This document shows, piece after piece, positions 13,407 through 57,600 of a stretch of DNA of 64,000 bases. Under the pieces are notes generated by a model, which was not told the origin of the DNA, did no database searches, and was given only the letters and a program-made list of their open reading frames with translations. The first letter of the stretch is position 1, and each line of letters opens with the position of its first letter. A program made the translations under genes and the position numbers. The stretch is from Ruditapes philippinarum (Eukaryota): contig NW_026857024.1 of assembly GCF_026571515.1 (NCBI RefSeq), positions 62,001 through 126,000 on the forward strand. The letters run 5' to 3'.

Positions 13407-16400
13407 GTCAATTTATGATAAACATAAAAAACTAGCATTTTATCGAATGAATAAAATCTTAAGAAAGTATGAAATAACTGTTGATATAAAACTGAGTTGA
13501 AGGTTTTATAATGCGAAAAAGTGATACTTAATATATTTAACAACAGAATGTTAATATAAGTAAAATTGTAAAACAACGATAAAAAGGAAATTCAAATAAA
13601 ATAACCTTCTGTTCTGTCCACTAAAATACAGTGACTAAGTAAATATTTTATATTTTCACCACATTATTTCACGACCTTGAGGGTTTTATTATGCATTTAA
13701 CAGCCGGATATTATTTTCGATAATTAATTTTATTGGAAACTATAGGTTGTTTGACCAAACACATCAACATTAGAAGGAGAATGTCTGACTTTGAATAATT
13801 CTTTCTATACAGACGTTTGAAATTCCAGTCCTTTTTTCCGGCGGCATCTTAAGTCATTGTAACAATAATATTGACCAAGTCATCAAACGACCCTGATTAA
13901 TGTTTCTTTTTTATATATTTAAAAAGTATCTCAATAATCAGGAAAAGTTAAGTACATTACTTTGCACATTTTTCAAACCACGAATACTCCCGACCTGTGA
14001 TACTTTACTTACTGAAGAAGTTAACATTATTCAAGCAAAACTGGACAATGTTATGATTTAGACAATCTTATACAATTTAAGGTTAATCCGTTGTGTAATA
14101 TAATGTAGATAATTATTGTGATTGCATAATTTATAAAGTTAGAGAAAAAAGAAGACGTCTTGCTTCGTTATCATTTTAATATGATTTGTGTTTCCACAAT
14201 TATGAATTAAGCAATAAAACAATTTATTTTGGCTCGCTAACATTTGAATATTATATGAATATGGAATGTGACTTATATTTGATAAATTTCAATCATTATA
14301 TTGTGTATGATGATGTACATTTATAAAGTCTAAAAACACTTCTGTTCTGTAATTCTTCACACAATCATGGTTATATTCTATGTATGTTTCTCATTCACAT
14401 TATAGAGCATTTGTTTCGCCACGTTTTGATATGGACCATACACTTTTAGAATGCACACTTTAAACAGATCATGAAATTGCATTGAACTAGTGTCAAGAAT
14501 GCCAGAAAACAAAAGGTGTTGTAAGAATTTTTAATAAAAAACAGAAGTTAATAGTTAAATATTTAGAATACAAAGTCTAATCGTGGCTGTCTGGGTGAAA
14601 GATCTGTAAATATTATAAATAAAAGTGGAAGATGAAAAAGTTTTGAATAATGAATGAAGTTACCGATTTAACTGCAAATGTAATTTAACTTACTGGAAAT
14701 AGAATTATCGTTATATTTTACTGCCAAAAGTCGTCCAACATTCAAGCATCACTTTCTAACATGCTAGACACGAAATCATTACGAATCTCAGACCTAAACT
14801 GATTACAAAATAGACCAAAGCTGATTAGATGTTGATCAATAATATTCTGAACAAAATTCCAGGCATGTACTGAATCTGAAGAAATATTGGTTTTCTATTT
14901 TTATGTTGTTGTTTTTTTTGTCGCAGATGGATCCTTAAATTCGTACAAAAACGCTTGTTTGTTTTTCATTTTGTTATGTATAGTTAAAGTACATATGCAA
15001 GGTGTTCCTTTTAAATTGATGTTCCGCGTATGTCTGCCTTTTTTGTTTTTGTTTACTTTTCTGCAACTCTGCACGATTTCATTATAAGCTAAGTGTGTAT
15101 AAGTGAATTCCTGATGCTTTGCTTGAAACTTAACTAGAGGGTTTTAATCAGAAATTACGTTGAAATAATGAAATTACCATTATCTCTCGGAAAAAAACTC
15201 TACAAAAAAACTAAACACGCAAGTTATGATCATACCGAAAAAAGATTTTGAATGTCAAATCATTTTACGTTACAAATTGTATAATATAGCATAAAATACA
15301 AGTATAATGATTGTGGGGTATTCCTAAGAATTCTTTTACGTAAATATAATCTAATATGCGTCTAAGAAAGCAAATACATGTTTTAATTTATAGGAATATT
15401 TCATATTAGCTGTGTGTAAATAGCTCAAATTGGCCCATTAACACTTTGCTATCTACAACGTACTACTGTCTGTTTTAAACGTTTTAAATTGGCAATGTTT
15501 ACCATTGTCTTATCTACAGCGCGTACAACTGCATATTTCAAATTATCAGCAGATGGCACTCAGATATTTGTTGTTATCAACAAAGATACATACTTTATAA
15601 TATCATTTTTGTAGATCAAATGGTATCAAACAGTGTCTTTATACCTAAGAATTAGTATCACGATAGACACATTACTTCAATTAGTAAGTCAAATAAGGTT
15701 ATAAAGATGTGAAAAATAATACTTATACCAAACTTTAGCCTTTCATTTAACATCAGTTACTCGTTGTTAGTCATGCTATGGATGTTCCAACTGTATATCA
15801 TCATGTTTTGTGTTAGGTCACTCAAAACTTTACTCCAGCGTTGGTAGAATTCCTGGTTCACTTTGGTATAGTTTATGGAAATTAAATTTGTTTTTAAATG
15901 TGAACAAAAAACTTTATTTTTTATTTTCAATGAAGATTCAAGGCACAATAATCCTTGTTTTAATATGTTAAGCTAGCATACGGATAGAGCAATCCATTGG
16001 ATAGCTGGATATATAACATTATGGACTACTTTATTATTTGCCATTTCTGGGATAAAGTTGTAGAAGTTGAATCTTTTTAACGCAAATTATATCATGTCAA
16101 AATAACGTTTGTTATTGAAATATTGCTTCATTTGTTCCAAATGACGGATCAATTTACAAAAACATGTGCTAATCCGACTTGGGTCGTGCAACATTTACTA
16201 TCTATGCACGCACATTTGTTTCATATATGATTGAAAAATAAAATATAGGCGGACATTTTTTTGTGTGTTTTCAGTTATAAATTTTGTGTGTTTTCAGTTA
16301 TAAATGATAGACAGTTTGAGTTGTGAGTTACTCAATGGTAACCTGATGTCACACCTCTGGGTACTCCAGGCCATTGTCGTATTATGCATTGTGGGCCGAA

Positions 16401-16922
16401 AGGTTAGTTGATTTATGTTTGAAATAAAAAAACAAAATTTGATATAAGGTTTTAGTTATCATAAGTAGCAATTTTAATGACCGTACTTGTATTAGATATT
16501 CGTAGTTTATAAAAATATACATTTTAAGTAAACAAGTAAACATTAAGATGGCAGATGAGGACATTTTAATTCTTAAACATAAAAACAGTAGATTATGCAT
16601 GTTTATTTGGTATGATTACGAATAAGATATGACATATACCAATCGTGTATGTCTATCTTTTCGGCATAATTTTTCCTTCCTTCGAAAACGCACAAGGCGC
16701 TCTTAATCTTTACTATGACTACGGTCGTATGAAAAAATCTGCGTATCTTTCTACATTCCAAATGTTCATTTATAAATATTAATTTCTTCTTTATCCGATG
16801 CAAGCGGACGCGGTCGGTAGCTTGCATTGGCTGTTTTAGGTGTTCTTTAAGGTTTAATTATTTTCTATTTTATATTACGTGTGATTGTAAAATATACTTT
16901 AAAGTGTATTTCTTTTATATAG

Positions 16923-17081
16923 GTAATGTGTTCAGGAATGTTTGAAGTATCCCTATTAAAACTGAACAATAATAGAGGTGTTACACACAATGAACAATGC
17001 TGCAAAGGGCCGTCTACGTATTCACCATGCTCTGGTGAATGTGACACATTCCTCACTGTATGTCTAATGAATTATGTTCAG
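16923..17081 (+). CDS. Delta: Delta-like ligand exon 2 (C2/MNNL domain)
   Basis: tag|gta...cag|gtaagc. Encodes VMCSGMFEVSLLKLNNNRGVTHNEQCCKG...CDTFLTVCLMNYVQ, typical of Notch-ligand N-termini. Confidence 0.93.
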
Positions 17082-17411: not shown

Positions 17412-17543
17412 TCAATGCCATCACCCCGCTCATGCACATATGGCTCTGCGACGACGTCACTTCTTGGTGGAAATGATATATCTCAAGATCAAATCCCCGA
17501 CGATGATAAAATTATCAAAATTCCAATCGACTTCGCATGGCCA
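17412..17543 (+). CDS. Delta: Delta-like ligand exon 3 (C2/MNNL domain)
   Basis: cag|tca...cca|gtaagt. Encodes SMPSPRSCTYGSATTSLLGGN...IKIPIDFAWP. Confidence 0.93.
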
Positions 17544-18386: not shown

Positions 18387-18447
18387 GGTAAATTCACATT
18401 GATTGTTGAGTCATGGCATGCACTAAGAGGAGAAATTAAAGTAAAAG
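18387..18447 (+). CDS. Delta: Delta-like ligand exon 4
   Basis: cag|ggt...g|gtatga. Encodes GKFTLIVESWHALRGEIKVK, resembling the conserved GTFSLIIEAWH motif. Confidence 0.92.
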
Positions 18448-18619: not shown

Positions 18620-18874
18620 ATTCTAACCAGCTGATCATACAGTCATTTATATCTACCACGTTAAAACCAACTACAAAGTGGTCAATGGACACAACAATAA
18701 CACCAACATCCGAACAGAGGATTCAGTATCGTCTTGTATGTGGCAGACATTATTATGGAAACGGATGTGATGTTTTATGTAGACCACGTGATGATCAATT
18801 TGGACATTTTACTTGTAGCACAAATGGAACAAAAATATGCAATCATGGATGGAAAGGACATTTCTGTGACGAAC
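18620..18874 (+). CDS. Delta: Delta-like ligand exon 5 (DSL domain)
   Basis: cag|at...c|gttagt. Encodes ...YRLVCGRHYYGNGCDVLCRPRDDQFGHFTCSTNGTKICNHGWKGHFCDE, an intact DSL consensus. Confidence 0.96.
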
Positions 18875-19039: not shown

Positions 19040-19100
19040 CATACTGTAGCGAAGAATGTTTTAAAAATGAGGGACGATGTGATCGACCTTTTCAGTGCAG
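19040..19100 (+). CDS. Delta: Delta-like ligand exon 6 (EGF1, DOS region)
   Basis: cag|ca...ag|gtatgt. Encodes PYCSEECFKNEGRCDRPFQCR. Confidence 0.93.
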
Positions 19101-20008
19101 GTATGTCATAAAATTTAAATTAATTAAAATCTGCATCAATTGCTTATGTTTAAAAATATCAAATTTGTTTTTAAACCGCAGATAACAAATATTTTTCTCA
19201 TCGATATATTGTGAAACTCATTTGGTGTTCTTACATTTTACCAAGAAGTTTTGGTTCTGTAAATATTGCTAACTGTTGTTTTATTTAGTGTTATGATACA
19301 CATGTACCAGCTCTTTGACTATTGTTTCTTAAGCATACACAAGGTTGTTTAAATGATCTTAGTAATGTTTTCGGATGTTGGCTCTTATCGTGATGCCTTC
19401 AATTAAACCAAAGTCATATGATCACTCTTGGTATTATTTTGATGACCTTTTAGTAAATACCATAACTATCTAAGTGATGTAAAAAACACTATATCTATAC
19501 ATCTTACAGTGAAATGGTCTATAATGGAAGGTCTATAATACACTGAATGATTATATATGATTAATATTTAGTATTATACCATCGTCGGATACCATCGGTT
19601 GATTAATGTTAATGGTTCGGACTTGGGACATTATTACGAACTTCTTAAAAGTCATACATTAAAGTTGTTGGCAAGTGTGAAGTGATATTTCATATATTTA
19701 AATTTATATAACGGATAATAAATTGTTCTAGAACAAAATATTATTATTGATCATATAAATGTTTATTCTACATCAATAAGAACTTGAACTTCATCAACAT
19801 TTTTATGCATAATTTCAAAAGAATATCCAAATGACACTTTACTATTGATTTGATCAGTATTTGAAATATTTATGTGAAATGAATCCATTGTAGAAAAACC
19901 ACTTTGAGCACACTATGTTAAATATACAATAACCGTTATTCTGAGACAAATATTCATATACTCAACTGAAAATAATTATAAAAAAGCATTGTATCATTTA
20001 TTTCGCAG

Positions 20009-20139
20009 ATGTAAACTGGGTTGGCAAGGAAAGAACTGTGAAGAATGCAGACCGCATACCGGATGTCTCCGAGGATTTTGTCACCAACCATACCAATGTA
20101 TTTGTGAAGACGGTTGGGACGGACGTTTGTGTGACATAG
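20009..20139 (+). CDS. Delta: Delta-like ligand exon 7 (EGF1-2)
   Basis: cag|a...g|gtatac. Encodes CKLGWQGKNCEECRPHTGCLRGFCHQPYQCICEDGWDGRLCDI. Confidence 0.95.
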
Positions 20140-20413
20140 GTATACGCCCACATACGAATTTATTAAAATGAATTATTATATTTATGTTTTGCATACATAA
20201 ACAGCAAAGTTTGTGCTGAATTTGCTTTTCAGCAATTGGTATTAATGAATCACAAAATATAACGGATTGTTATGTAGAAGTTAAAATAAATAACTATATA
20301 TATTCTTAAACAAGTACTGTTTTTCATATAACTGTATTTTGTTACAAAGTAATGCATTTTAATTTTTTTAAACATTATACCTTGTTGAATAAAAGCTGAA
20401 TAACTCTTTTCAG

Positions 20414-20577
20414 ATTTGAATTACTGCACAAAAACTCAGCCTTGTTTAAACGGAGGTACGTGTATTCCAGACCTGTTAGGCAACTACACATGCTTATGTG
20501 CACCTGGATTTGGAGGAAAGAACTGTATGAATCCATTGTGTTTTGATGAGTATTGTAAAAATGGAGGATCCTGTCTG
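20414..20577 (+). CDS. Delta: Delta-like ligand exon 8 (EGF3-4)
   Basis: cag|at...ctg|gtaaat. Encodes DLNYCTKTQPCLNGGTC...YCKNGGSCL. Confidence 0.95.
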
Positions 20578-20956
20578 GTAAATACATATTGTTATTACGT
20601 TGATAAAAATCAGTGTCAGTTTATTTAAAGAGATTGCACATGTTTATTTCTATATAATCTGACTATTCATTGAATTTTCTTGAAAAAGAAAACCCTCCTA
20701 TTGTAAAGTAGAGAAATCAAAACTCGCCAGTTGAACACTTGCTTTAAATCTATATCTATATTAATTTTCTAAAATAGTCCTGGCATTTGAGTATGCAGAA
20801 TGAAATCACTTAAATATTAGTAATATATCTTATGATTATTTCGATGCACCAGAACAATATAGGTTATAGAAAAAAATGAATAATAAAAATGAAATATATT
20901 ATTAGATTTTACTCGTATATTATTTAAACTGTAATATTATTACATAATATTTACAG

Positions 20957-21170
20957 ACAAGAGGTGGGTTAAGAGAATGTCAGTGTGCAGAAACGTTCTA
21001 CGGCCAACAATGTGAAAACAAGATTTTATCATGCATGGAGGTCCAGTGCTTAAATGGTGGAGTTTGCAGAACTGGGGAGCTCGGAGGATACTGTAGTTGT
21101 CCAGAGAAATTTACGGGAAACAGATGCGAACATAGAATCAATCCGTGTTCTTATCACCCATGCGAAAATG
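20957..21170 (+). CDS. Delta: Delta-like ligand exon 9 (EGF4-6)
   Basis: cag|aca...g|gtactt. Encodes TRGGLRECQCAETFYGQQCE...CLNGGVC...CSCPEKFTGNRCEHRINPCSYHPCEN. This exon is not in the ORF track. Confidence 0.93.
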
Positions 21171-21590
21171 GTACTTGCTTATAAGATATTATATTATTAT
21201 AAAATTATATAAATTAAATTATTAAAACTTTTTTTATTGTTTTAAAAGGAATCGAAGTGATCATTTTCTCGCATATATATGCTTTTTTCTGCTTAAAACA
21301 CTGACTTTGTTTCTGAACCCAAATTCGTGAAGCTACAACAATAAATATGGATTTTCGAAAGACGTTTTTAAAATAGTTCCAAGTAAAATGTGGTATAAGT
21401 CGCATAAAATAATTGCACACCTAGTAAATCCGTAACAAAGGAATGCGAAAATAAAGGAATGGTACAAAAGTAACGCCAAATTTGTGCAATATATTACACG
21501 TTACTGTTTTCTTTAAAATAAAAAAAACTAATTATTTAGGTACTTGTATACAAGAAACAAACTTTATTACCATATATCTTTTTATTTAAG

Positions 21591-22213
21591 GAGGAGAGTG
21601 TAGAGAAAATATAAAATCTTCCTTGGGTTATAAATGCATTTGTCCACCCGGATCTGGAGGTGTCCATTGCTCCATATCCATAGACCCATGTGCTGGTATA
21701 ATGTGCTTTCACGATGGGCTGTGTAAATATAAAGATGGCGACAACAGACCAAAATGTGCTTGCAAAAATGGGTATCACGGCGAATACTGTGAAATAATAC
21801 AAGATCCATGTGCTGGAGTAAAATGTAAAAATTCAGGCACTTGCAAGCCGTCCCCAATGGGAAATGGATTTTTGTGCCATTGTGCCAGGGGTTACCATGG
21901 GGAAGTTTGTGAACTTGAAATTAACCAATGTGATAGTTCTCCATGTAAAAATGGCGGATTGTGTAAAAACTATATTTCAACATTTCACTGCATTTGTCCT
22001 GAAAATGTTTCTGGTAAATATTGTGAAAAAAGAAAGCACGAAAACAAACATGAACGTACATCATCGACACAGAATGATGGAACAGCTGACCATACAGCTG
22101 TAGGCAAAGACAACTCTGATAAAAGTAAAAACATAATTAGTGGTTCAAACCGTTTTCATTCGGCAACATTACAGAGCTACATTTTTCTTGCAATATTATT
22201 TTTCTTGGTGTGA
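21591..22213 (+). CDS. Delta: Delta-like ligand terminal exon 10 (EGF6-9, linker, hydrophobic C-terminus)
   Basis: aag|ga gga gag tgt, open to TGA at 22211-22213. Summed exon length from 13314 is 1893 nt (630 aa + stop) with all splice phases compatible. Confidence 0.95.
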
Positions 22214-22295
22214 AACGTTATCAGATCTCTTTTACTTGGTCAATAATTTTGTTTGTTATGTTTACTTGTGATAAATGTTTAATGTAATATATAAT

Positions 22296-22301
22296 AATAA
22301 A
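22296..22301 (+). terminator. Probable polyadenylation signal of the Delta-like gene
   Basis: AATAAA ~80 nt after the stop codon, followed by T/GT-rich sequence. Confidence 0.55.
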
Positions 22302-23354
22302 TGAACACAAATTGTGATTAATTTGTTTATTATATCATTAATGAAATATGGAAAGTCGTTTTGTACTTTTCCTCATGTTACTGAGAAAGAAGCTTTTGAT
22401 TTTATAACAATTGTCTATTTAAAAACTATATCCAGTAAACATATCTTCCGATTAATGATACAATGCAACTGCTGAAAGCCGGAGATCCCAAAGAGTAGTA
22501 ATGAATAAAACAGGACATTATTCCTATTAGTACTAAAAAGCTACCTATGCACTGGCTATTACTGAAATATTACTGAACGAAACGTTTGATGCCTTTTTCT
22601 AAATCAATACAGGATCAGGCGATCTTGTTCTCTGATTGACTTACTTGCTATACTAAAAACTGGAGTCCGATTAAAAGGTCAGGTTTTAGCATTATGTTAC
22701 TGTAGAGTACACACACACGCTGTCATTTCAGTTTGCTGATTAGTAGATTTCTAAATTGATCTTAATTACAATTTATCTTAATTACGTTAGTTTTATATGA
22801 CATTCTGTTGCCAATTTGAATTTACAAGTCGTATGTGCTGGTAACTAAATGAATGTGCTGCAAGTTTAAATGGCTAATGAACAATAAATCAAATCGAATT
22901 GTACTGAACTGATAAACAAGCTCACCATTTAGCTATAGCACATTTGATCTATAACCATTAACATGTAATTGCTTTAGCATAAGAATAAAGTCAGGCTTTT
23001 TAATATTCTGTTTTCTAAATAATTAATAATTCTCTTATTCTGTTTTCTGAATAATATATAGTTTCCACATCCCCAACATTGGTAAAAAAACATTAATTTT
23101 CAAAGAAAAAAAAAGAAGAAAAAAAGCAAAAAAGTAAAAATATAAATTGTATGTAACAAAAGAAAAAAATGAAATAGAAAAAGGTAGCTGTATGGACAAG
23201 TCAATTTAAGAAATTCAGCAGGAAAAGTTGAAAGTTTAACTTTATCTTCATAATGCAATAACAAATATTTGTTATATTATTCATCTGTCAATTGTTCAAT
23301 ATACAATGCATCGAAATAAATGCATAAATAGCTATAAATACATACATGTATAAG

Positions 23355-23880
23355 AATCTGGAAAAAGCTGATCCCTTGAAATATAAATCACAACAAAAAA
23401 CAACATGCAAATTGCAGACTCGGTTTAATTGAGTCTGTACATGACGAATAATGAAAAATAAATCACTAGCACTGTCTTGATCGGTACACCATTTTCAACA
23501 CCTAAATCAATGACCCCGAAGGACCAGAAACATATAGCAAAACTGAAGTGAAGTACAAAATATGATAAACAAGATCGACAAGGAAAGGCGGCGTTCAATG
23601 AACGCAGCCCCCACCCGACTCAGTAACAAGCGTCAGTGGCAAGGAGCCCAGGAGGACCCCAAACAAAAATAGGACAGGGCATAAGGCAGAGCACGGGCAG
23701 GCAAACCACTACATAAGATTAAATAATTACCATTACCATTGGTAAATAATAAACAAGGCAACTTTTTTTCAGCTGCAACACGACACTTGACACCTGCTGT
23801 TGTGGGCTATAGAAATCTGGAAAAAGGTTATCTCTCGGAAGCATTTATCACAACAAAATTAATAAAAATTGCAGTCTCGT
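23355..23880 (-). mobile_element. Family B short element (partial tandem) with a family A element inserted at 23557-23710
   Basis: Colinear with 43079-43389, but interrupted at gaagtac|ggcaact by the A sequence aaaatatgataaacaagatc...aaaccact. The unit start is repeated from 23813. Confidence 0.8.
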
Positions 23881-24360
23881 AAAAAAGAGAAGAACGGAAC
23901 CCGTTCAAAGCTTTACCTGAGCGCCTAACAAATGGATAATTTATTATCTTTATCACGGGCATACGTTAAATCCATAGAATTCGATGGAATAAATGTGAAA
24001 ATCGTAATAGAATTGTTGATAATAGCATGCTTTTTTTATAGCAGTGCAATGCAATGTTCAACGCCTAGATTATTATATAGTTCAAGGATTCATTATGCAC
24101 TGGTATCACATCTTTTTCACGATTACACATTTAAGAAACCACCTGTAAGACAATATATGAGAACAAAGCTCAACCAGGACCGAATACCTGTTATTCACAT
24201 TCCATCACTAAAACACTAAACTTCCATTAATGATAAAGTCTTGTTTTAACATTGGTAACCGTCATACATTTTCTTTTGCTTCTTTAAATTGTGTTTAAAC
24301 ATCACTTTATATCAATGCTATTGCACTACTATGTGAATCTATATAAAATTAACATTCTAA

Positions 24361-24585
24361 AGGGGCTTCCGATGCCAAGGTCATTGACTTCAACCACTAG
24401 CCTCTCTTCGCTATATGTTCGAATTCGCCAGAGGTTTTCGAGTTTTTCATGTGCTATCCAGCTAGCTGGCTCTACTCAGGTGCACGTTCAGGTCTGATAT
24501 AATGCATTTAGACGCATCTGAGGTATTTTTCTATCAGTAAAACCTTTACAACGTTTACAGTGTTGGTGCGGCGTAAAACGACCCC
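24361..24585 (+). mobile_element. Degenerate tRNA-derived SINE (bivalve V-SINE-like)
   Basis: Head ggggcttccg..aaggtcattgacttcaaccactagcc..gttcgaat (A/B-box-like). Body ttcatgtg..atccagctag..ctctactcaggtgcac..ataatgca..gcatctgaggt. Tail gtgttggtgcggcgtaaaac. Confidence 0.7.
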
Positions 24586-26869
24586 CACCCCCTTCCCCTC
24601 CAGAAAAAGCAATCTAAGGATTATTTAATTCTATACGTAATACATTAACGACATTTTTTCACCATACCGTGTACTGTAAACAAATCATCACTTATTTACA
24701 TACACTGTTTCAAATTGTACTTTATATTTTGTGAAGTAAAAACTTGGAGTCTGAACCGTAGTTTATTCAACTATTTCTAAAAGTGAGATTTAGAGATAAT
24801 TATGTATTTGTAAACAACATCAAAGAGACGAAATTGCTATTTGCTAAATACCACTGCCAATAAATTGGCAATATAGCAGACTGATTAACTATCTGTGACC
24901 AATTAATTTTAGTGATCACTTTTAAACGGGAACAGAATCCGATTTGCAAAGTTGCGTTGAAATTTGTAGACATTTAAAAACTTAATTACAGTCTGAAACA
25001 TCGCAGAAATAATATTTTGAAAAGATTCTAAACTTTAAGTGCGTAGAATCATCATGAAAATGAATGCAAATAATACGCTTTGTAGAGCATTATTTTTTGT
25101 AAAAAATATCTTGGTAATAACCAAATAATTTATAACTTAATTTATAGTGTATTTTAATGAGGGCTAATCAATTTACAAAATCTCTCACCTCTAAAAATAT
25201 AGTTGTCATTTTAATGTGCAGAAATCAAATATTTAAACTTAAATTCTTATCCACCCAAATAATTGGATATAATAAATGATACAATGTAATTAACCAGCTG
25301 ACGTTGCTTAATGAACCTTTAGGAAATGTTCATTATTAAATCAAGATCCTGTAACACATTTTTTCATTTTTTATTTCATAAATATGATGCTCAAATTAAG
25401 ATTTGTCAATATTTTAAGTTCCAATAAGCATTATTTATAAAGATATTACCGAATTTAACATTTCATGCAAATAAAGGGAGTAATTAGAAATTTATTTTCT
25501 ATAAATTGTAAGTATAATTTATTGACTTAATATAATATGCACAAATATTTGCAATACACATTTTACATATTATTCGATGTTTGAAAATTGTTTTATTTGC
25601 ATAATTATATACATATATAATTTTTTGCAAGTGTGGTATACACACAGTAACAATATCAATCACATAACATACAGGATCTTTAAGGATATCATAAAGAATT
25701 TTTTTAAAAAGTCAATCAGCAGTATAGAGCCAGGTCAGATTGCACTGATGCGCAGAAGACACAATGCTAATCACTTCCGGTTCCAGCAGGTTCACATTTA
25801 AGATAAAAATTTCATGGTAAAATATCCTAAATCTGACATTGAAATAGAAGCTTTCATCAATGCTAAATACATTATTTAAAATCGTACATTATATTTGTGT
25901 AAAATTTCTAAGCATTCTCTTTGAAATAAATGATTAAGGTTTAAATAATTTTTCGATTCTAAACCTTACCATGAAAAAAAAATTACCCTTAAGCTTCCAA
26001 CAGAACACACACTTTTCAAAATGCACGTATGTACAGGATAGCAGTGCCAAACGGAAGTTGTTATCCTATCTATTATTAATCAGATTATTTACGACTGTCA
26101 ATAATTACATTTTTGTTCTCAAGTAAATACTGTTATTTGTCGCCAAAGTTCTCGGTAAATCTGTATGTTTACAGCATTCGGTTATTCGGATTTGTCCGGC
26201 ATTTTGGGTATTGCCTAGTTCCCAGCACTCGTTTAATATAGTTGGGTTAATTTCAGTAAGTCGGGTATAAGTCAGACAGGCTTAACTGTATAAAAACTCG
26301 TGAAAATCGTGCACCTCTCTCTCTTTTCGCCAAACAGCTAGCTTACAGCCAGTTTAACAAGTACAATAGACTAGTTTTTAAATCAACGTGGTCGTACTCA
26401 TGCGAGAAGGGTCGTTTCCTCAGTAAGAACAAAAAGCCATTCAGGCAGGAGAAATGCTGCCTCTCGACCAAGGGATTGGAATGTAGTTGGTAATTCCCCA
26501 AGCTAGACAGACAACCGACAACCCGGGACAAGCGTCGGACCACCAGCTCCTGTTGATAGCCATACACGAGGCAGAAAGCGTGCACGTGTTGCCTTAGCAG
26601 ACGACGAGGACAGCTGCCTTTTACAGCCTAATGCGGGTAGGTCCTCTTAGATTATTGATTTTGAAACTATAATTCGCGATTCGGGAGTTCTGGACCCGGA
26701 AAATAGAAACAGAAATGTTCTTGAAAGACATCGTGGCTAATGTGCTGGCAATAATATTTCCGGTACTGGCGATTCTAACGAAAACGTTTCTAATGTTCCG
26801 GTTATTCAGTCCATCCAGCAAAGTAGCTCGCATATCCAGCCCGAAATACGTTTAGCAGGGAATGAGTTT

Positions 26870-28594: not shown

Positions 28595-28749
28595 AAATAT
28601 GATAAACAAGATCAACAAGGAAAGGCGGCGTTCAATGAGCGCAACCCCCTCCCGACCCAGTAACAAGAGCCAGTGGCAAGGAGCCCATGAGGACCCCAAA
28701 CAAAAACAGGACAGGACACAAGGCAGAGCATGAGCAGGCTAACCACTTA
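28595..28749 (-). repeat. Family A short element inserted in the Ngaro RNase H
   Basis: aatatgataaacaagatcaacaaggaaaggcggcgttcaatgagcgc...aaccact, close to the copies at 23557, 44327 and 55455. Confidence 0.85.
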
Positions 28750-29632: not shown

Positions 29633-32600
29633 AAGGGGAAGTAACTCGTGTTAAGTTAAATAACAAAATTGTTGTTCTTTTCTGTCTATCTTAGATATTA
29701 CTTATTATTTTTGTTGTATAAAATTTACCAGTTGTAAGGTCATCAAAAGCATAGAGGCCCTGAGGAGTGAATATTGATAGATTTTTTTACTGGCTTTATA
29801 TACCTTAGACTGGATTTTTCTTGTTTGTTCAGTTAGTACAAACACACAGGTATTCTGTACAGGAATCTTCTAATCACTATGTGAAACTTATTATTACTTT
29901 CTATGTGTTTGTAATTAAATTGTTAATTAAATAACCTTTGGTAAAAATGAAAGGTAGAAAATAAAAGCTATGCATATAGGTGCTCATGTCCATATATCAA
30001 AACAGAGAATGGATAACATCCTAAAGTTATCAATTTTTAACACTTGATATATATGTAGTTAGTTATGTAGTAAAGTCTAATGGAAGGTTAAAAGAGGGAC
30101 AGTATTTGTTACTGTAAGAGATATGCATTTGATGTTTAGACACTCACACAACTCAATCTTTATTATATGATATAGACTATTTGAGATTGTTTTTCTTTTA
30201 TACTTTACAGTATAGTTTTCTTTCTACACGATTATGAATTTCATCCAAGTACCAATGTTGATAGGATGTTATATTTATTTTTAATGGAAACTGGGAATAC
30301 ATAGATGTGTATCGTAGTATATGGATATAATGTGTATTTCTGTATTTAAAGACTTACAGTTATGATGGATGAGACTTGCATTTAAAGGACAAGGTTCACA
30401 AACAGGGCTTTTTAGCCCAGTAATTTTACAAATGCAAAACCATGAAATATAAACGATATCCGACATATTTTACAAGAAATGGCCTATTTCTATCAAAAAA
30501 AATCACAAAATACCACAGTAAATGGTATTTTAATGTCTAGAAAACACAACTTATTAACCATGCATAATTGTCAAAATAGCGAAATTCTGAACGTTCACTG
30601 TCGTATTTTGTTAAAATAACATATGAAGAGCCACAAGCGACACAAAGTCCTTTTCAGGTAATGATACTTAATATATAATAAAGCTGTGGCCGAAATATGT
30701 TGGTGTCGGGTTTGGCTCTTAATATCTAAAAATAATGTTTTCTAACATTTATTGTTGCTATGGAAAATCGGTCTTAGCTGATAATACCTATGATATTTGG
30801 CATGAAAACAATATTTTTATTTTAAAATTTTAACTAAACTAAGTTCTCATGTAGACCTTTAATAAAATAATATAAACTTAGACAGCAAGTGATTTATAAC
30901 ATCTTTTGCGTGGTTTTATTTTTAATCACTATCCGAACTTGCCCTACCCAAATACGTGGTTGATCAGAAAAAAATGTTATCCGTGTGTGGAAAAAGTTTG
31001 TTTATGTCTTGCTAATAAATGAATACTTAAGACAATATAGCACATTACATTTATGTTTAACCCGCTTCTCGTAAGAAACAGCAGAAATGCGTACAAACGC
31101 CAACTTTTGGTTCGAGAATTGACCACTACTGTATTCAAGAGAATTAACTCGACATTGAAACACAAACTGAAAGTAGACTGCTATTGTTTTTCTCTCTGAT
31201 CGTTTTCCAACACTTTTCAGCGATGTAGGTGCAAAAACTGGAAACAAAAGGTAGAAACTTTTGTATAATTATATTTTGTGATGATAATACTTTTAAATTC
31301 AATTTCTGTATCGAATCAATACGTTTATTTCGATCTGTCATTTTGTGTTGTTACGGACGCAGACGTCAACATGTCAACTTTTAAAATTATGGAAGAACAG
31401 TGATAAATCAATAGTGAAATTGAAATATTTGGTAATGAATTAAAATATTTGAAAGATTTACAGAAAAGAGCCTTAAAGTATCGTTTTAAGGTAGTAACAC
31501 ATTGATAATGGTTTTTTAAGTGTATTAATATTTGTTTTGCAGACGGGATAGTCGATGTAGTCCATAGCCTAGTGTCACCCGATAGGCCGGAGTTCAAAAC
31601 CAGGTAGCTACCCTTTTTTTCTTGTCTCTTTTTTTCAACAACTTTCTTTAGATATCTTACTCATGTGTTTTATTTTGCTTTGAATTTTAAAAAGTTTTTT
31701 TTAATAATATTTGAAAGCTTAAACTGCATCAAAGAAGACCTGTCAACAAAAATATAGCTAAATATTTATGGAAATTCTATTTGATGCAAACAACCAATTT
31801 GGATTTTATTTGTGGAGGTTGCAGAAGAAAAGTGTATCCAGTTTCTAGTGCACAGCCAAAGTCATCAGTTTCAGACACATCAACAAAATCTACTGAAAAT
31901 CAGACAGCAACAGCAACAACATCTACAGCCTGTAAAAGTCCTCTATCCATTCAGCTTCCTATTAAATCTACATCCAAAAGCCATTCCTACTGTTTCATTT
32001 GTAAAAAGCCAGGTCCCAAAATCATAGTTGAACCAGCAAATATAAGATATTCAGTGTTCATTGAACATGGAATTATTATCACAGCTGAAAGCAGATGTTG
32101 TACTTCTCATTTCAATCACAACTTAAACGAATTTAATAAAGAAGAACTAGTGAACATGAAAACAAAAGAACAATCATTTTGAACAGAACTACGATTACTG
32201 AATTCATCAATAAAACTAGAGAAATTGCCTTAAAGTCTTCAAACAAGAGAATGTCATTTGACAGTATGCATACCTATACAGATGAAGATTTAATCAACTT
32301 GACAGGCCTAAACAAAGAACAATTTCTTGATTAATACCAACATGTTGAATCTTCTATAAAAACACTCCAGCAAGAACCTCCATAACAACACTTGGTATTT
32401 TCCTCTTAAAAATGAAATGTGGACTTTCAAACAAAGTATTATCAACAACATTCAATATAACAAAATCAAGTATAAGAAGAGCAATTCACTCAGCTAGACA
32501 AGCTCTTTGTGATATTATTGTTCCTGCCCATCTTGGATTTGAACATGTTACTAGAGAAGAAATCATTAAAAAACACACCAGAAAATTAGCACAAGACCTT

Positions 32601-33222
32601 CTACCTGAAAGCAATAACCAGGCAATTCTAGTTCTTGATGGAACATATATTTACATTAACAAAAGCAACAACTTTCAATTCCAAAGGAGAATCTTTAGTA
32701 TGCACAAGCACCGACCATTAGTTAAACCCATGATAATTGTCTCCACCACTGGTTATTTTGTAAATGCTTTAGGGCCATATTTTGCTGACTCAAAAAACAA
32801 CGATGCATCCATTCTAAAACATATTTTAAACAACAACATACAAGAAATCAAATCATGGATTGACCCCAGTGACATTTTTGTAGTAGACCGTGGTTTTAGG
32901 GATGCTATTGAATTAATTAAGGAACTAGGAATACAAGCAAAAATGCCTGCCTTTATAAAAAGAACAGAAAAACAGATGACAACAGATGATGCAAATGCCA
33001 GTCGGTTTGTAAAAAAGGTAATAATTTAAATAATCAACTACATATACAATTAATTATTATTATTAACTTCAGATTTAAATGCATAGCTTTTAATTGAAAA
33101 TTATTTTATGAGATATATTTAAAGTTCAATTCTTATATATGAAATATTGAACATTTCTAAAGTAAAAGAAGATAAATTACATTGTATAATATTATCAACT
33201 TAATATAAGTTCATATATTTTC

Positions 33223-34125
33223 ATGTATACTTTACATCGACCTGTAAAAATTTGTTCTCTATACCTTTCTCCAAATATAACGGTAACAAGTGATGAACTT
33301 GAGAGTATTGTTCGACAATTACCATCACCTTTCCTTCTCTTAGGCGACTTTAATGCTCATAATCCTATGTGGGGCAGTACATCTACAAATAACAAGGGTA
33401 ATATAACTGAAAAATTGATAGATAACTTTCAGGTTTGTTTATTAAACAATCGGTCACCTACATATTTACATCCAGCTACAGGTACGTTTTCTTGCATCGA
33501 CCTCTCGATTGTCCACTCTGCTATATTCTTGGACTTCGATTGGAAAGTGTTAGATGACCAGTACGGCAGTGATCATTTTCCATTGTTACGTACATCAAAT
33601 GACTCTATACCAGATGAAAGACGTCAATTTTTTAAATTTAAGAAAGCAGATTGGGAAACATTTTCTAGGCTCTGTTCCATTGATCTAACAAAAAATGAAT
33701 TTAATTTCACTTCTGCTGATATAGCTGAAACGTTTTCTTCAGCATTACATACTATTGCCTGCAAAGTTGTTCCATTAACAAAAAATAATAGTAACAAAAT
33801 CAAAAAGCCATCGTTTAACGATGAATGTAAAAAAGCTGTTCGCATACGTAAAGCTTCACTAAAAAAGTTTGAACGTCGCCCTACAACAGAAAACCTTGAA
33901 AATTATAGAATATTTAGAGCTAAAGCTAGAAGATCAATTCGTTTGTCTAAACGCAAATCCTGGCAATCATATGTTTCAAATATTAATTCAAATACTCCTA
34001 TTAAGAAAGTCTGGGATGCAGTACGGAAAATAAGTGGTAAGTATAAAAAGAGTCCAATTGTTCACTTAAAAACTGGTGATGGCCAATATGCCAAAACAAA
34101 AACGGATATTGCAGAAACTGGCTAA
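33223..34125 (+). CDS. LINE ORF2 AP-endonuclease region (5'-truncated, frameshifted from the RT part; the ATG lies in the TSD)
   Basis: LGDFNAHNPMWGS, PTY, SCIDLS and GSDHFP motifs. Confidence 0.8.
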   Translation: MYTLHRPVKICSLYLSPNITVTSDELESIVRQLPSPFLLLGDFNAHNPMWGSTSTNNKGNITEKLIDNFQVCLLNNRSPTYLHPATGTFSCIDLSIVHSAIFLDFDWKVLDDQYGSDHFPLLRTSNDSIPDERRQFFKFKKADWETFSRLCSIDLTKNEFNFTSADIAETFSSALHTIACKVVPLTKNNSNKIKKPSFNDECKKAVRIRKASLKKFERRPTTENLENYRIFRAKARRSIRLSKRKSWQSYVSNINSNTPIKKVWDAVRKISGKYKKSPIVHLKTGDGQYAKTKTDIAETG

Positions 34126-42725: not shown

Positions 42726-43078
42726 GAGTCTTGTTTGTTTAAAGCGCTATTTTTACTAGCATATTTTGGGCTATTTAGAGTCAGTGAGCTTGTTGCCCCC
42801 ATGCCAGGTAGGGCTAGTCAGTTACAGCTAAGTGATTCTATATTTATCTATTTTTTAATTGACAAACGATACTTACATATAAAATTATAAAAAAAAATCA
42901 ACGAGGTAAGCGAGTTGAAATGAAAGCCGAGCAGTGAGCATTAGTTTTGCCCTGTTCAAGCAATATCTGCTTATCTAGCAATTATATCGTCTATTCGCGG
43001 TCCTTTATTTTGTCATTCTAACAGTTTACCGGTTACACGAACACAATTTTCTTTCGTTCTTAAGAAATGTATTTCTAA

Positions 43079-43389
43079 AAATCTGAAAACAAAGTGATCC
43101 CTCGGAAGCATTAATCACAACAAAATAACAGTAGTATTGCAGACTCGGTTTGATTGAGTCTGTAAATGAGGGATAATGAATAGGTGCAACATACATCACA
43201 CCCCCTAGCACCGGCTTGAGTGGTACTCAATTCTCAACACTTATTAGTGCTGGAATCAATGATCCCGAAGGACCAGAAAAATATTACAACACTGAAGTGA
43301 AGTACGGGGCAACTTTTTACAGCTGCCACACAGCCCTTGACACCTGCTGTTGTGAAGTATACAAATCTGGAAACAAAGTGATCCCTCGG
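43079..43389 (-). mobile_element. Family B short element: 284-bp unit plus a 27-bp terminal direct repeat
   Basis: aaatctgraaacaaagtgatccctcgg at 43079-43105 and 43363-43389, inserted in the YR gene just before HSFRIG. Confidence 0.85.
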
Positions 43390-43960: not shown

Positions 43961-44125
43961 GGCTGTCTGATATTTTTCTAACCATTTGGATAAAATATAA
44001 GTTCATTTTGACTATATATGAATTGAAAACGCCTTCTTATTTAACCGGAATCCATTAATTAATCCACAGTTACAATATATGAAACCATACCGTCAGTGTA
44101 TGAAACCGAGGTAGCAATATATAAT

Positions 44126-44480
44126 TCTGGAAACAAAGTGATCCCTCGGAAGCATTAATCACAACAAAATAACATAAGAATTGCAGACTCGGTTTGATTG
44201 AGTCTGTACATGAGGGACAATGTATAAGTGCAACATCAATATAAGTTGATTTTGTCAATATATGATCCCAGTTCTTCAATATAAGGTACCAAAGTAGCCA
44301 TGTATGGAATCAGATATCCTTATATGAAATATGATAAACAAGATTAACAAGGAAAGGCGGCGTTCAATGAACGCAACCCCCATATGACCCAGCAACAAGA
44401 ACTAGTGGCAAGGAGCCCAGGCGGACCCCAAACAAAAACAGGACAGGGCAAAGACAGAGCACGGAAAGATTAATCACTTA
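44126..44480 (-). repeat. Family B truncated copy (44126-44237) followed by a family A copy (44327-44480)
   Basis: Direct matches to 43082-43190 and to 28595-28749 respectively. Confidence 0.8.
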
Positions 44481-44856
44481 ATGATAAATAATTTGTAACT
44501 GATTAGGAATTCAAAGAAATCAAGTAAATGATTGACTATTGGCCCACACAGTCAAAGGGGAAGGGGACAGGAGACCGGGGGAAGGGTTAATCAAAAGAAA
44601 TAAAAACTAGGGGTAATGGGGAAGATACCGTACACGAGAAAAAAACAAGGGACACAAGCAAAAGTGTCACCAAAAACAGTATGAAACAACATAGACATAC
44701 ATCTGAGGAGCACAGAAGGGCGCCGCCTTGGAGCGGTCAGAAGCATAATAATGACTGCTGGGGAGTTTAAACAGGTTAATGGTGCACCAAACCTCGCTTT
44801 TAGCCCCACCATGTTCCTATAAACGAGACAGTGTAAATAAAATGAATCCCCGCCAA

Positions 44857-54600: not shown

Positions 54601-57600
54601 ATCTCAAACTTACAGGAAAGAACTGAATATAAGAATAATTTGTATTGGTCATTTTAAATAACAAATTGAATTCCAGGAATCTCATTGGCCATTCTAAAAA
54701 AATGTAAAGGATAGTTCTTGCAATTCTAAAATAAAATGTTAAGGATAGTTCTTAAATAAGATGTACATGAGAATTCTTGTCCCTATAAAATAAAATGTTA
54801 AGGATAGTTCTCAAATAAAATATACAGGATAGTTCTTTAACTTTTTTATTCGGCCGAAGGCCGTCTAATTTCACCTTGACTTCCGCTAAAATTAAAGAAA
54901 TGAATATAGGTAGAATTTTCATTGGTCATTTTAACACTAATAGTATGTCCGATTGTAACTTCAGAAGAGCTTATAGGTACAGGTTTGTTCGATTGCGCGA
55001 TGGCAAGAAGTGTTGGAAAAAGATATAAATCCGAATAAATAAAAAAACACAAAAATGATATTTTCTAGATGTTTCTAACAGCTTTTCAATAAATATATGA
55101 AATTAAATATGACAAACCGCCATTTGCTGTTCTAGTCATTATATTCTCTTCTCGAACCGAGCATAAGACGATTGAAACGAACTTTCGACTAATTTACTGT
55201 TGCAAAATTCTCCGTGGAATCAGTGTACAGTATCTACTAAATCTTTGTTTTATTATAATTTCCTATTCAAATCAAATTCCATTTTGATTAAAATCAAATA
55301 ATGTAAGTAATATTGTTTAAATCTAAGATGACAATTAATGGGGAAAAACATTGCGGGTAAAAATGAACTGAAATAAAACTATTGAAGACGAATAAAATGT
55401 TCTATTTGCGGTTAGCATGGTTAGAAGTAACTTATCCTATGCAAGTTAACAAAAAAAATGATAAACAAGATCATCCAAGAAAGGCGGCGTTCAATGAACA
55501 CAGACCCTACCCGACCCAGTAACAAGGGTCAGTGGCAACAAGTTTGACTTCGGCCGAGTATCTTTTTAAAGATACTTCTTGGTTAAATTGCTGAGATATA
55601 ACCAAACTCCCCCACAAAACATGTTACACTGCGTTAAGATCTCATTATATTTTCTAGTGAACAGTTTGTTTTACATGAGTTTATTTTTTACAATAACTAA
55701 CTGAGTTATAAATATTGTTTTACATATACGAGACCAACAAAAACGTTCACTATCCTGTAAGTTTACTAAGTTTATATTAAAATATCGAAAAACACACCAA
55801 AATATAAGAACTTATCAGGTACTCTCAGGTTATGATGTTTAATAAGTTTATGTGTTCAATTGATATAATGTTCATAATTTTAGAATAAATAATCCTTTTA
55901 TTTCTATTTGCAATATTATAGCGGGAAACCTAATATATTTCTGTTGGCCACATTCTGAAAAAGATAAGATTTTTTATATATAATTGATACTCCTTGAAAT
56001 TTTCTTCTGAATTGCGGACTTGAACAACTAAAATGGCGACACTGGCTCTTTTCATTAACTTTTTATTTTATGACAACTTTGAGATAATATGAACTTCATT
56101 TCTCTCTTTACGCTCTTATGTTATTTTAACTTTGCATAAACACATGAGTGAAAGGTGGTTTTTTGGGATTTAAGGGAATGCAATATATTGGCAAGTCTTT
56201 GTCTCTTGTTCTTATTGATATGTTTGTCATGATATAATCATTTTGAAAATCATTTTGAGAGCCACTGACTTGTGCATACTTATAGTATTATTATTTAAAT
56301 ATTGAAATCTGTCGAATACTTTCTGTAATGTTGTACGTAATTAACACTCTTTTCTAATCAATATTAATGTTTTTAATAAAGATTTTAAAACAATATTTTC
56401 TGATGTCATTGATTGATATAACGATAACCTGATTTAATTGAGACGAACCTACAAAGCTTGACTTTTTATCCTATCTAACACAAAGGGACCACAAATACAT
56501 GTAAAATGTATGACAATAATCAGCATCGAATATTCTGAAGAGCCGTCATGTTATCTTTATTATTATTCTTTACTACTTTATTTCATATTTTTTATTGAGT
56601 TTTAATTGCTGTCAACAACAAAGATATCTTACTATGAAAGATATCTATATACATATTTTATAATCTCTAAAACGAATGGCACTTACTCGAAGAAAAGTAA
56701 AACGAGTTAATAAGACTTCTTTGCTTGTAAGTATGTGCAGATATTTCTACTTAAATCCTATTACAAAGTACCTATCAAGCCATGTAACATCCTTAACTTA
56801 TACTTAAATTCGATCTTTCAGTCGGATTTTTTGCAATATAAATCAATCCTTTAGCCAAAATACAGTATTTCTCCTAATAGATGACCATACCAACTTATTT
56901 ATAATTCTCAGTATTGTCTTAGAATAAGTTATAGGTTGACTCTTTACTTAATAGGAAATGGTTCCGATGTGTCTTTTTATTTAAAGGTATATTTTTATTA
57001 TTTATTAAAACTTTTAAGTGTTGATGAAATAACTTTTATACAGTGCTTTTATTATAATAATTATAATAATAATAATAATTATTATTATTATTAAAGTGAG
57101 ACAACATAACGGCTTTTCCAGCAAATACAATGTTGTCAGCTGGTAACTTCGTTTTAAATTCTCTAATATTGTTTGCAGAGGGAAATAATGGTAAGTACAT
57201 TCACCTGTCTAACATCCCAAGACGATTTTTCTTTGACAAGATGTGCTTCCAGCTAAAAACAATACCTGTTCTTTTTAAACAACACTTCTATAGTTTAGAC
57301 TTAGTTCTTCCTCAATATCAGAAAATGTTTAAGCGTTGCAGTTGTGGTAAGCATGCCTTTGGTCACGTCCACAACATTGCGATTACAGGCAGGAAATACG
57401 TGTAGCAGTAAGATGATGTAAACTTGAGGAAGTTTAAATTTTTTTGTTGTTTTGCAGGAATTAAACATTTAATCTTAGCGACGGGCATTTGAAGTTGAAG
57501 AAATGTTGGAATTCGTTTTCCTTTATAAAGATAATTTTTCTTTTGGCCGGAGCCATTTAAAATAAAATGTAAAGGAATCAATATTTCTTGCATTTCTAAA

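Follow-up and report, generated by a model that had tools for sequence, protein, structure and literature searches.

In the standard model of Notch activation, a ligand is pulled into its own cell by way of ubiquitination of its cytoplasmic tail, which opens the receptor; canonical ligands are described as needing both Mib1/Neuralized ubiquitination of the tail and epsin-dependent endocytosis (PMC5675594, PMC3241720, PMC2063980). The closest described system to the gene treated here is a mollusc-specific clade named “Delta2” and marked by early termination (PMC8166818; Sci Rep 2021;11:11378): it is found in bivalves, gastropods and cephalopods and not in a chiton; separate frameshift or nonsense events were proposed for the individual lineages, with the transmembrane (TM) segment lost or retained; and its developmental expression is complementary to that of Delta1, with a reported rise of Delta2 in C. 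gigas and P. martensii at the umbo stage. Among other described ligands, DLL3, a vertebrate DSL paralogue, is a pure cis-attenuator (PMC2171428), and Caenorhabditis elegans has secreted Notch ligands and co-ligands (PMC2504490). Here we describe a ten-exon gene on the + strand of a 64,000-nucleotide (nt) stretch of the genome of the clam Ruditapes philippinarum (contig NW_026857024.1, positions 62,001 to 126,000; hereafter the window), which on the evidence of its sequence is the R. philippinarum orthologue of mollusc Delta2.

As this paralogue has been published as Delta2 with early termination (PMC8166818), its lack of a tail was already known; what we add is the clam orthologue, RNA proof that its last exon is terminal, a family-wide contrast of its C-terminus with that of Delta1, and the hypothesis that this C-terminus is a signal for attachment of a glycosylphosphatidylinositol (GPI) anchor. 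Our reading of the whole, which we favor by a modest measure, is that clam Delta2 has a full ectodomain, lacks a tail, ends in a GPI signal, and would bind Notch without pulling on it. A phylum-wide, expressed Delta paralogue with a canonical binding head and no tail is a natural experiment on a ligand that binds but cannot pull; should the GPI reading prove true, it would also be the first natural lipid-anchored DSL ligand of which we have found any trace.

The end of the gene and its relatives

Translation of 21593–22213, in exon 10, gives half of one EGF repeat and three whole repeats, followed by a polar linker (EKRKHENKHERTSSTQNDGTADHTAVGKDNSDKSKNII), the triplet S-G-S, a 7-residue spacer (NRFHSAT) and a hydrophobic stretch (LQSYIFLAILFFLV) that runs directly into TGA, so that the protein ends in CEKRKHENKHERTSSTQNDGTADHTAVGKDNSDKSKNIISGSNRFHSATLQSYIFLAILFFLV. 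Depending on where the count begins, the hydrophobic run is 10 (the Kyte-Doolittle core IFLAILFFLV), 12 (from SY) or 14 (from LQ) residues long; its Kyte-Doolittle sum is 34.8, versus 68–89 for the TM helices of Delta1. The original prediction, made from the letters alone, had described this same layout (polar linker, S-G-S at 22139, short hydrophobic end, TGA, then AATAAA), and the translation reproduces it, with AATAAA 83 nt after the stop. It had also claimed that the protein has no cytoplasmic tail, and indeed nothing is encoded after the hydrophobic stretch of an exon that is terminal in RNA.

Exon 10 is terminal, because RNA crosses the GT at 22208 unspliced and ends after AATAAA, and the gene yields a transcript that is polyadenylated directly beyond this exon. 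Among the 24 public runs listed, 20 (from 13 studies) contain 0.70–0.77 of the sampled words of 21591–22330, and just one of those runs, an RNA-Seq of “mollusc metagenome”, is on record as RNA. Four runs (X1, X14, X22 and X24) were aligned to 20380–26300. An X1 contig of 1060 nt covers 20488–20576, 20956–21169 and 21590–22346, and an X14 contig of 937 nt covers 20956–21169 and 21590–22300; the joint from 21169/70 to 21590/91 (GT..AG) is present in both contigs and in two raw X24 reads. Since the two contigs are spliced at upstream GT..AG introns, they represent RNA, and both run unspliced across GTGTGA and the stop. No joint or loose end at 22208 was reported in the four runs; depth is 0 from 22360 onward in X14, X1 and X24, and X22 gives thin cover only, as it does over introns. 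Whether RNA would splice out of exon 10 at 22208 was the check that the original prediction had proposed for the terminal exon; the spliced contigs pass through that site and the stop and end at 22346 (X1) and 22300 (X14). No Rfam family was found on 22200–26300.

Sequence resembling the TM segment or tail of Delta1 is absent across the 64 kb, as judged by a tblastn search in which the C-terminal 205 residues of nine canonical Deltas served as queries (best E 0.055). The best match, in intron 6 (19372–19464, + strand), is an open stretch of 31 residues (RMLALIVMPSIKPKSYDHSWYYFDDLLVNTI) that shares 35% identity with the closing 31 residues of the tail of clam Delta1 (ending SSYYGDDVLATEV); its position does not suit a relic tail exon, and chance is the most likely explanation.

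R. philippinarum carries both a canonical Delta1 and the tail-less gene of the window. Searching its own assembly (1.41 Gb) with the DSL exon returned the exon itself, a locus with 45% identity on contig C9385, and further DSL loci with weaker matches. The C9385 locus is a canonical Delta whose last exon encodes TTTQLLLIVCLGVGIPLLSIIIVVTILLCRKRRSPPLKSREEEENVQNSINNKL, and over that stretch it is identical to P0313 (delta-like protein B, Ruditapes philippinarum). Clam Delta1 (P0313) has 814 residues, with a 25-residue TM segment (LLLIVCLGVGIPLLSIIIVVTILLC), the basic cluster RKRR, and a 170-residue tail ending in DVLATEV. The clam genome holds many more DSL-like matches (L004–L010, e.g. C15656:61946-62086, C2425 and C14444), two of them with in-frame TGA, and some of the proteins P0006–P0017 have 6–13 DSL-like stretches each (594–1442 residues); these multi-DSL proteins fit the bivalve-specific tandem-DSL proteins of PMC8166818.

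The tail-less end is common to about 20 Delta2 orthologues from Veneridae, Mactridae, Myidae, Unionidae, Pectinidae, Arcidae and gastropods. Genomic open reading frames (ORFs) of five other species (P0001–P0005) are 52–78% identical to exon 10, with the stop in or just after a short hydrophobic stretch. Full-length tail-less proteins come from Mercenaria, Mactra, Mya, Sinanodonta, Mizuhopecten, Ylistrum, Tegillarca, Patella, Lottia, Gigantopelta, Babylonia and Littorina, and to these are added four Logan ORFs, two of which are complete ORFs on contigs the size of a transcript (P0158, 2077 nt; P0160, 2277 nt). Ends of the Delta2 type lack a basic cluster and consist of 10–25 hydrophobic residues (Kyte-Doolittle sum 24–54) plus 0–6 more (18 in Babylonia), whereas every canonical Delta compared has 25–33 hydrophobic residues (sum 68–89), 2–5 Lys/Arg within six residues, and 81–213 further residues.

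In a maximum-likelihood tree of 38 rows, which the window gene entered as separate exon pieces, Delta2 forms a single mollusc clade with a long stem (Shimodaira-Hasegawa-like approximate likelihood-ratio test, SH-aLRT, 99), and the Delta1 proteins together with annelid Delta form the other clade (95–98). The exon 5 and exon 10 pieces of the window lie within the clam subclade (100), nearest Mercenaria and P0158, and branches in Delta2 exceed those in Delta1 several-fold in length. The comparison of orthologues and the tree that had been proposed as checks thus agree in setting a tail-less group of bivalve and gastropod proteins apart from Delta1, and the window gene, being conserved and expressed, is therefore no canonical Delta cut short by a private nonsense allele. 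In the Delta1 proteins, the TM segment (LLLIVCLG[VA]GIPLL.III.V; P0313, P0165, P0303, P0162, P0164 and others) is near-invariant from annelid to clams; conservation beyond the need of a plain anchor suggests that it may have a sequence-specific intramembrane role.

Gene structure and ectodomain

Each of the ten exons is open, and the introns between them are GT-AG with consistent phases, as read at the borders (Table 1); the ten open stretches are colinear with P0010 (neurogenic locus protein delta-like, Mercenaria mercenaria, XP_045203022.2, 642 residues). The exon lengths sum to 1899 nt, that is, 632 codons and a stop; the length is this sum, and searches of the window were done on single exons or with public proteins. 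The original prediction of about 630 residues in ten intact exons was therefore close to what we find. A chance ORF is excluded because Pfam domains lie in separate exons and spliced RNA spans exons 8–10.

Table 1. Coordinates of the window gene and of the features of its 3′ end (a slash marks an exon border)
Feature	Position	Strand	Remarks
Exon 1	16304–16402	+	start codon and signal peptide MIDSLSCELLNGNLMSHLWVLQAIVVLCIVGRK; 79% identity to P0010 residues 1–34; donor AAG/gttagt
Exon 2	16923–17081	+	first part of MNNL/C2; PF07657, E 4.5e-13, 49.4 bits; borders tatag/GTA and CAG/gtaagc
Exon 3	17412–17543	+	MNNL/C2 continued; PF07657, E 8.9e-8, 32.2 bits; 72% identity to P0010 residues 85–130
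Exon 4	18387–18447	+	MNNL core strand GKFTLIVESWHALRGEIKVK; aligned to P0010 residues 131–150; borders ttcag/GGT and AAAAG/gtatga
Exon 5	18620–18874	+	end of MNNL and DSL domain; PF01414, E 3.3e-17, 62.9 bits
Exon 6	19040–19100	+	EGF1, first half of DOS; YCSEECFKNEGRCDRPFQC fits C-x3-C-x(3,8)-C-x(2,5)-C; weak EGF_DL_JAG match
Exon 7	20009–20139	+	end of EGF1 and EGF2; PF21700 EGF_DL_JAG, E 1.1e-9; Tyr in place of DOS Trp (QPYQC)
Exon 8	20414–20577	+	EGF3 and start of EGF4; Pfam EGF, E 9.7e-11; joint 20576 to 20956 in RNA contig X1
Exon 9	20957–21170	+	EGF4–5 and start of EGF6; Pfam EGF; RNA joint 21169/70 to 21590/91
Exon 10, coding part	21591–22213	+	rest of EGF6, EGF7–9, polar linker, S-G-S, spacer, hydrophobic end, TGA
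S-G-S, candidate GPI omega/omega+1/omega+2	22139–22147	+	24 residues from the end at its first Ser; hydrophobic core 12 residues further on
C-terminal hydrophobic stretch LQSYIFLAILFFLV, 14 residues	22169–22210	+	no K/R; no cytosolic residues encoded after it
GTGTGA, candidate splice donor, unused	22209–22214	+	crossed by RNA contigs X1 and X14
TGA stop	22211–22213	+	in-frame continuation NVIRSLLLGQ, TAA at 22244–22246
3′ untranslated region	22214–22346	+	AATAAA at 22296–22301, 83 nt past the stop; transcript end ~22300–22346

The encoded ectodomain begins with a signal peptide whose hydrophobic h-region (LWVLQAIVVLCIV), read by eye in exon 1, precedes the SG[MV]FE start of MNNL. The MNNL and DSL matches stand above the Pfam cut-offs of 22.5 and 24.2 bits, respectively. 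The DSL exon aligns residue for residue with human DLL1 (4xbm, E 1.4e-22), fly Delta (7alk) and DLL4 (4xl1), and exon 5 also matches the DLL4 (4xlw) and Jagged-1 (5uk5) structures; the CRPRDDxFGH core of DSL is intact. Pfam gives EGF/EGF_DL_JAG matches in exons 6–10, weak in exon 6, and no match to a VWC or Jagged-type domain in any of the ten exons, and the cysteine count in the translations, together with colinear P0010, yields nine six-cysteine EGF repeats. In exon 10, which begins at 21591 behind an AG, the Pfam EGF match falls into three stretches (E 3.1e-19), and the 65% identity to P0010 residues 426–640 belongs to an alignment that continues past the TGA.

The DOS region departs from the published consensus, which ends ...C-x(1,4)-W-x(1,4)-C (PMC2504490): its first half is matched in exon 6, and its second half fails in exon 7, where Tyr replaces Trp (HQPYQC). 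This replacement is common to the window gene and its near relatives, and the strict pattern is matched by 4 of 17 Delta2 proteins versus 12 of 16 canonical Deltas. Since the strict pattern fails, binding of Notch is assumed from the DSL and MNNL domains. The original prediction that the C2, DSL and DOS regions are all intact thus stands for C2 and DSL, by Pfam and by the structures, and for the cysteine scaffold of EGF1–2, and falls for the strict DOS consensus.

Repeats and transposon ORFs lie 3′ of the gene. A unit of ~450 nt at 23350–23950, with further occurrences at 28595–28747, 43076–43389, 44118–44493 and 55453–55538, has a summed RNA contig depth of 800–1650 on both strands. The start and end of the unit match each other, the “Family B” unit at 43079–43389 is a relative of it, and hundreds of X22 reads join 23861 back to ~23410 (452 back) with 5–6 extra letters between; such back-joins indicate that the unit elsewhere stands head to tail or is circular. 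The segment 25330–25730, single-copy within the window, has RNA depth up to ~1700 in X1, on both strands, with many reads running into unlike sequence at 25683/4, and is probably another dispersed repeat. Further downstream, Pfam finds a fragment of a DDE_Tnp_4 (Harbinger-type) transposase at 32412–33026 (+) and the endonuclease domain of an endonuclease-reverse transcriptase of a long interspersed nuclear element at 33223–34122 (+).

Nature of the hydrophobic end

We propose, at a confidence a little over one half, that the C-terminus of Delta2 is a GPI-attachment signal. The layout of the predicted protein fits such a signal: a signal peptide at the start; a small-residue triplet, a spacer of 5–8 residues and a short hydrophobic end; and nothing after it. 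In the clam and in several other species the hydrophobic stretch is too short for a bilayer-spanning helix. An omega-like triplet 6–13 residues before the core is present in 17 of 20 Delta2 sequences, versus 9.6 ± 2.2 in linker shuffles (3 of 2000 as high), and in nine clam sequences the triplet occupies one alignment column (SGS, SGS, NGS, NGS, NRS, NRA, NNS, SIS and SGT). Between the window and Mercenaria, exon 10 is 65% identical overall, and none of the 14 residues of the hydrophobic end is identical by our own count in the alignment, although its character is kept. An end that is unconstrained in sequence, next to a near-invariant Delta1 TM segment, is expected if the Delta2 end is a cleaved signal.

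Several observations weigh on the other side. The shuffle figure is not a probability, because the Delta2 sequences share ancestry. The omega rule is permissive: 81% of Delta2 tails satisfy it, and so do the juxtamembrane regions of 9 of 14 canonical Deltas (64%); we accordingly dropped it as a discriminator between Delta2 and Delta1 and count it as weak support only. Several triplets in the omega column double as N-x-S glycosylation sequons. Some ends resemble a TM helix and stub, e.g. ILWSLIKLFMVVVLARIL-KRSLLFEY in Mercenaria and ...FTTNII-RSLLFG in P0001, and the Arg of such stubs was aligned with the stop-transfer Arg of Delta1 in PMC8166818. The clam TGA stands 10–12 codons before the stops of its nearest relatives (...RSLLFG and ...KRSLLFEY), and the window gene does not conform to the strict DOS consensus. 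As to precedent, the string “GPI” has no occurrence in the text of PMC8166818, and no mention of a GPI-anchored or GPI-linked Delta was found in the literature searched, most subscription journals being outside its coverage; within the literature covered, the GPI reading of Delta2 appears to be new.

The alternative that survives best, serious though in our judgment unlikely, is that Delta2 is a type I membrane protein with a real TM helix and a vestigial tail of 0–10 residues, and is not GPI-processed; it would still be tail-less and Mindbomb-independent. PMC8166818 frames Delta2 as a Delta1 ended 1–10 residues past the post-TM Arg, which speaks for such a protein, and the hydrophobic segments of Mercenaria, P0001, Lottia and Littorina, at 16–30 residues and in some cases followed by K/R, agree with it. 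The segments of the window (10–14 residues), Gigantopelta (12–16), P0272 (13–16) and P0160 (14–17) do not, as they compare with 25–33 residues in every canonical Delta; Kyte-Doolittle sums are about half, there is no basic cluster, and the segment is unconstrained in sequence, unlike the TM segment of Delta1.

It is improbable that clam Delta2 is secreted or shed in soluble form, or retained in the endoplasmic reticulum, its end neither spanning the membrane nor suiting the transamidase, so that it would serve as a diffusible antagonist or agonist. The very short hydrophobic end and the secreted Notch ligands and co-ligands of C. elegans (PMC2504490) lend themselves to this account, but a hydrophobic end kept in 20 of 20 orthologues over several hundred million years would be pointless in a freely secreted protein.

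More doubtful still is the possibility that the TGA at 22211–22213 is private to the reference haplotype or an assembly error, and that the common allele reads on through NVIRSLLLGQ to the TAA at 22244–22246; the protein would then look more like a TM segment with a stub, and would still be tail-less. The frame after the stop does align with the tails of relatives (TTNIIRSLLFG in P0001 and RILKRSLLFEY in P0010), and the reference is not free of unusual residues. At 21714, 21886 and 21922 the covering records of all four RNA runs disagree with the reference, at 22134 those of three runs do, and at 22136 those of two, the RNA alleles carrying Asp to Gly (21714, A>G), a silent change (21886, C>A), Ile to Met (21922, T>G), Ile to Arg (22134, T>G) and Ile to Val (22136, A>G). 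The RNA residues at 21714 and 21922 are those of the orthologues, which makes the reference haplotype the odd one at both positions. However, none of the best-supported differences listed falls at 22211–22213 (each contig has two more beyond those listed), and the codon of a relative at this place is Thr, from which two changes would be needed to reach TGA. This precise stop is peculiar to the clam lineage or to the reference allele, and the tail is absent either way. The concern, raised with the original prediction, that the stop might be a private nonsense allele is thereby divided: tail-lessness is conserved in orthologues and belongs to the gene, and the exact stop is not conserved.

Finally, we consider it very improbable that we are dealing with a canonical Delta having overlooked TM and tail exons, reached by splicing out at ttg/gtgtga, or with a decaying pseudogene, for although a GT follows the last sense codons and Delta2 branches are long, this reading is contradicted by the RNA that crosses the GT and ends after AATAAA and by the tblastn search, which found nothing like an intracellular domain in the 64-kb window, and it sits poorly with ten open exons that have GT-AG borders and encode the full pattern of cysteines, with an architecture found in ~20 species, and with the presence of the sampled words in 20 of the 24 listed public runs (one of them on record as RNA).

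Under the GPI reading, the transamidase would cut near S-G-S and leave the ectodomain lipid-anchored on the outer leaflet. With no tail there would be no Mindbomb/Neuralized ubiquitination, hence no epsin-dependent endocytosis and no pull on Notch; Delta2 would then bind Notch without the usual pulling force, and the likely outcomes would be cis-inhibition, competition with Delta1 and Jagged, or, at most, weak signaling that does not depend on a tail. From this we infer a function as decoy or cis-inhibitor. The complementary expression of Delta2 and Delta1 (PMC8166818) is consistent with a modulator and is no proof of one.

Comparison with known systems

The window gene shares with published Delta2 the clade, the MNNL-DSL-EGF order, a shorter protein (632 codons, versus 814 residues for its own Delta1), termination at the hydrophobic segment or directly past it, and a separate Delta1 in the genome. 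It differs in that the venerid gene is not among the named examples of that study, and in that the clam stop falls within the hydrophobic stretch, four codons ahead of the Arg used there as a landmark. With canonical Delta and DLL1 it has in common the signal peptide, MNNL/C2, a DSL domain with CRPRDDxFGH, the EGF1–2 scaffold and nine EGF repeats; unlike them, it lacks the 25-residue TM segment, RKRR, and the tail of 80–210 residues with NNK-type and ATEV motifs, has Tyr for the DOS Trp, and evolves much faster.

DLL3 resembles Delta2 as a DSL paralogue, and Delta2 by its build is expected to attenuate Notch as well; however, DLL3 keeps its TM segment and tail and has a degenerate DSL domain and N-terminus, whereas Delta2 keeps DSL and loses the tail, and the two are not orthologous. 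The secreted DSL and DOS proteins of C. elegans are likewise natural Notch ligands without the module of TM segment and tail, but they are small, have DSL and DOS split between them, and are without MNNL, long EGF arrays and a conserved hydrophobic C-terminus.

Engineered Delta and Serrate ligands that lack the tail act as dominant negatives in fly and frog. Delta2 resembles them in having a full ectodomain without an intracellular domain; they are laboratory constructs, whereas Delta2 is natural and conserved across the phylum. Pairs of lipid-anchored and tailed proteins are known from other families: ephrin-A proteins are GPI-anchored, ephrin-B proteins have a TM segment and tail, and NCAM, CD58 and CD16 occur in GPI and TM forms. 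We see an even chance that molluscs possess a comparable pair among Notch ligands, in that Delta2 may be a natural GPI-anchored DSL ligand across bivalves and gastropods, with an ephrin-like split between a tailed, endocytosis-competent Delta1 and a lipid-anchored Delta2 that would inhibit in cis, compete, or signal independently of Mindbomb/Neuralized. If the GPI reading holds, the likeness of Delta2 and Delta1 to the ephrins, NCAM, CD58 and CD16 would be one of arrangement, a lipid-anchored protein beside a tailed one, with no relationship in sequence.

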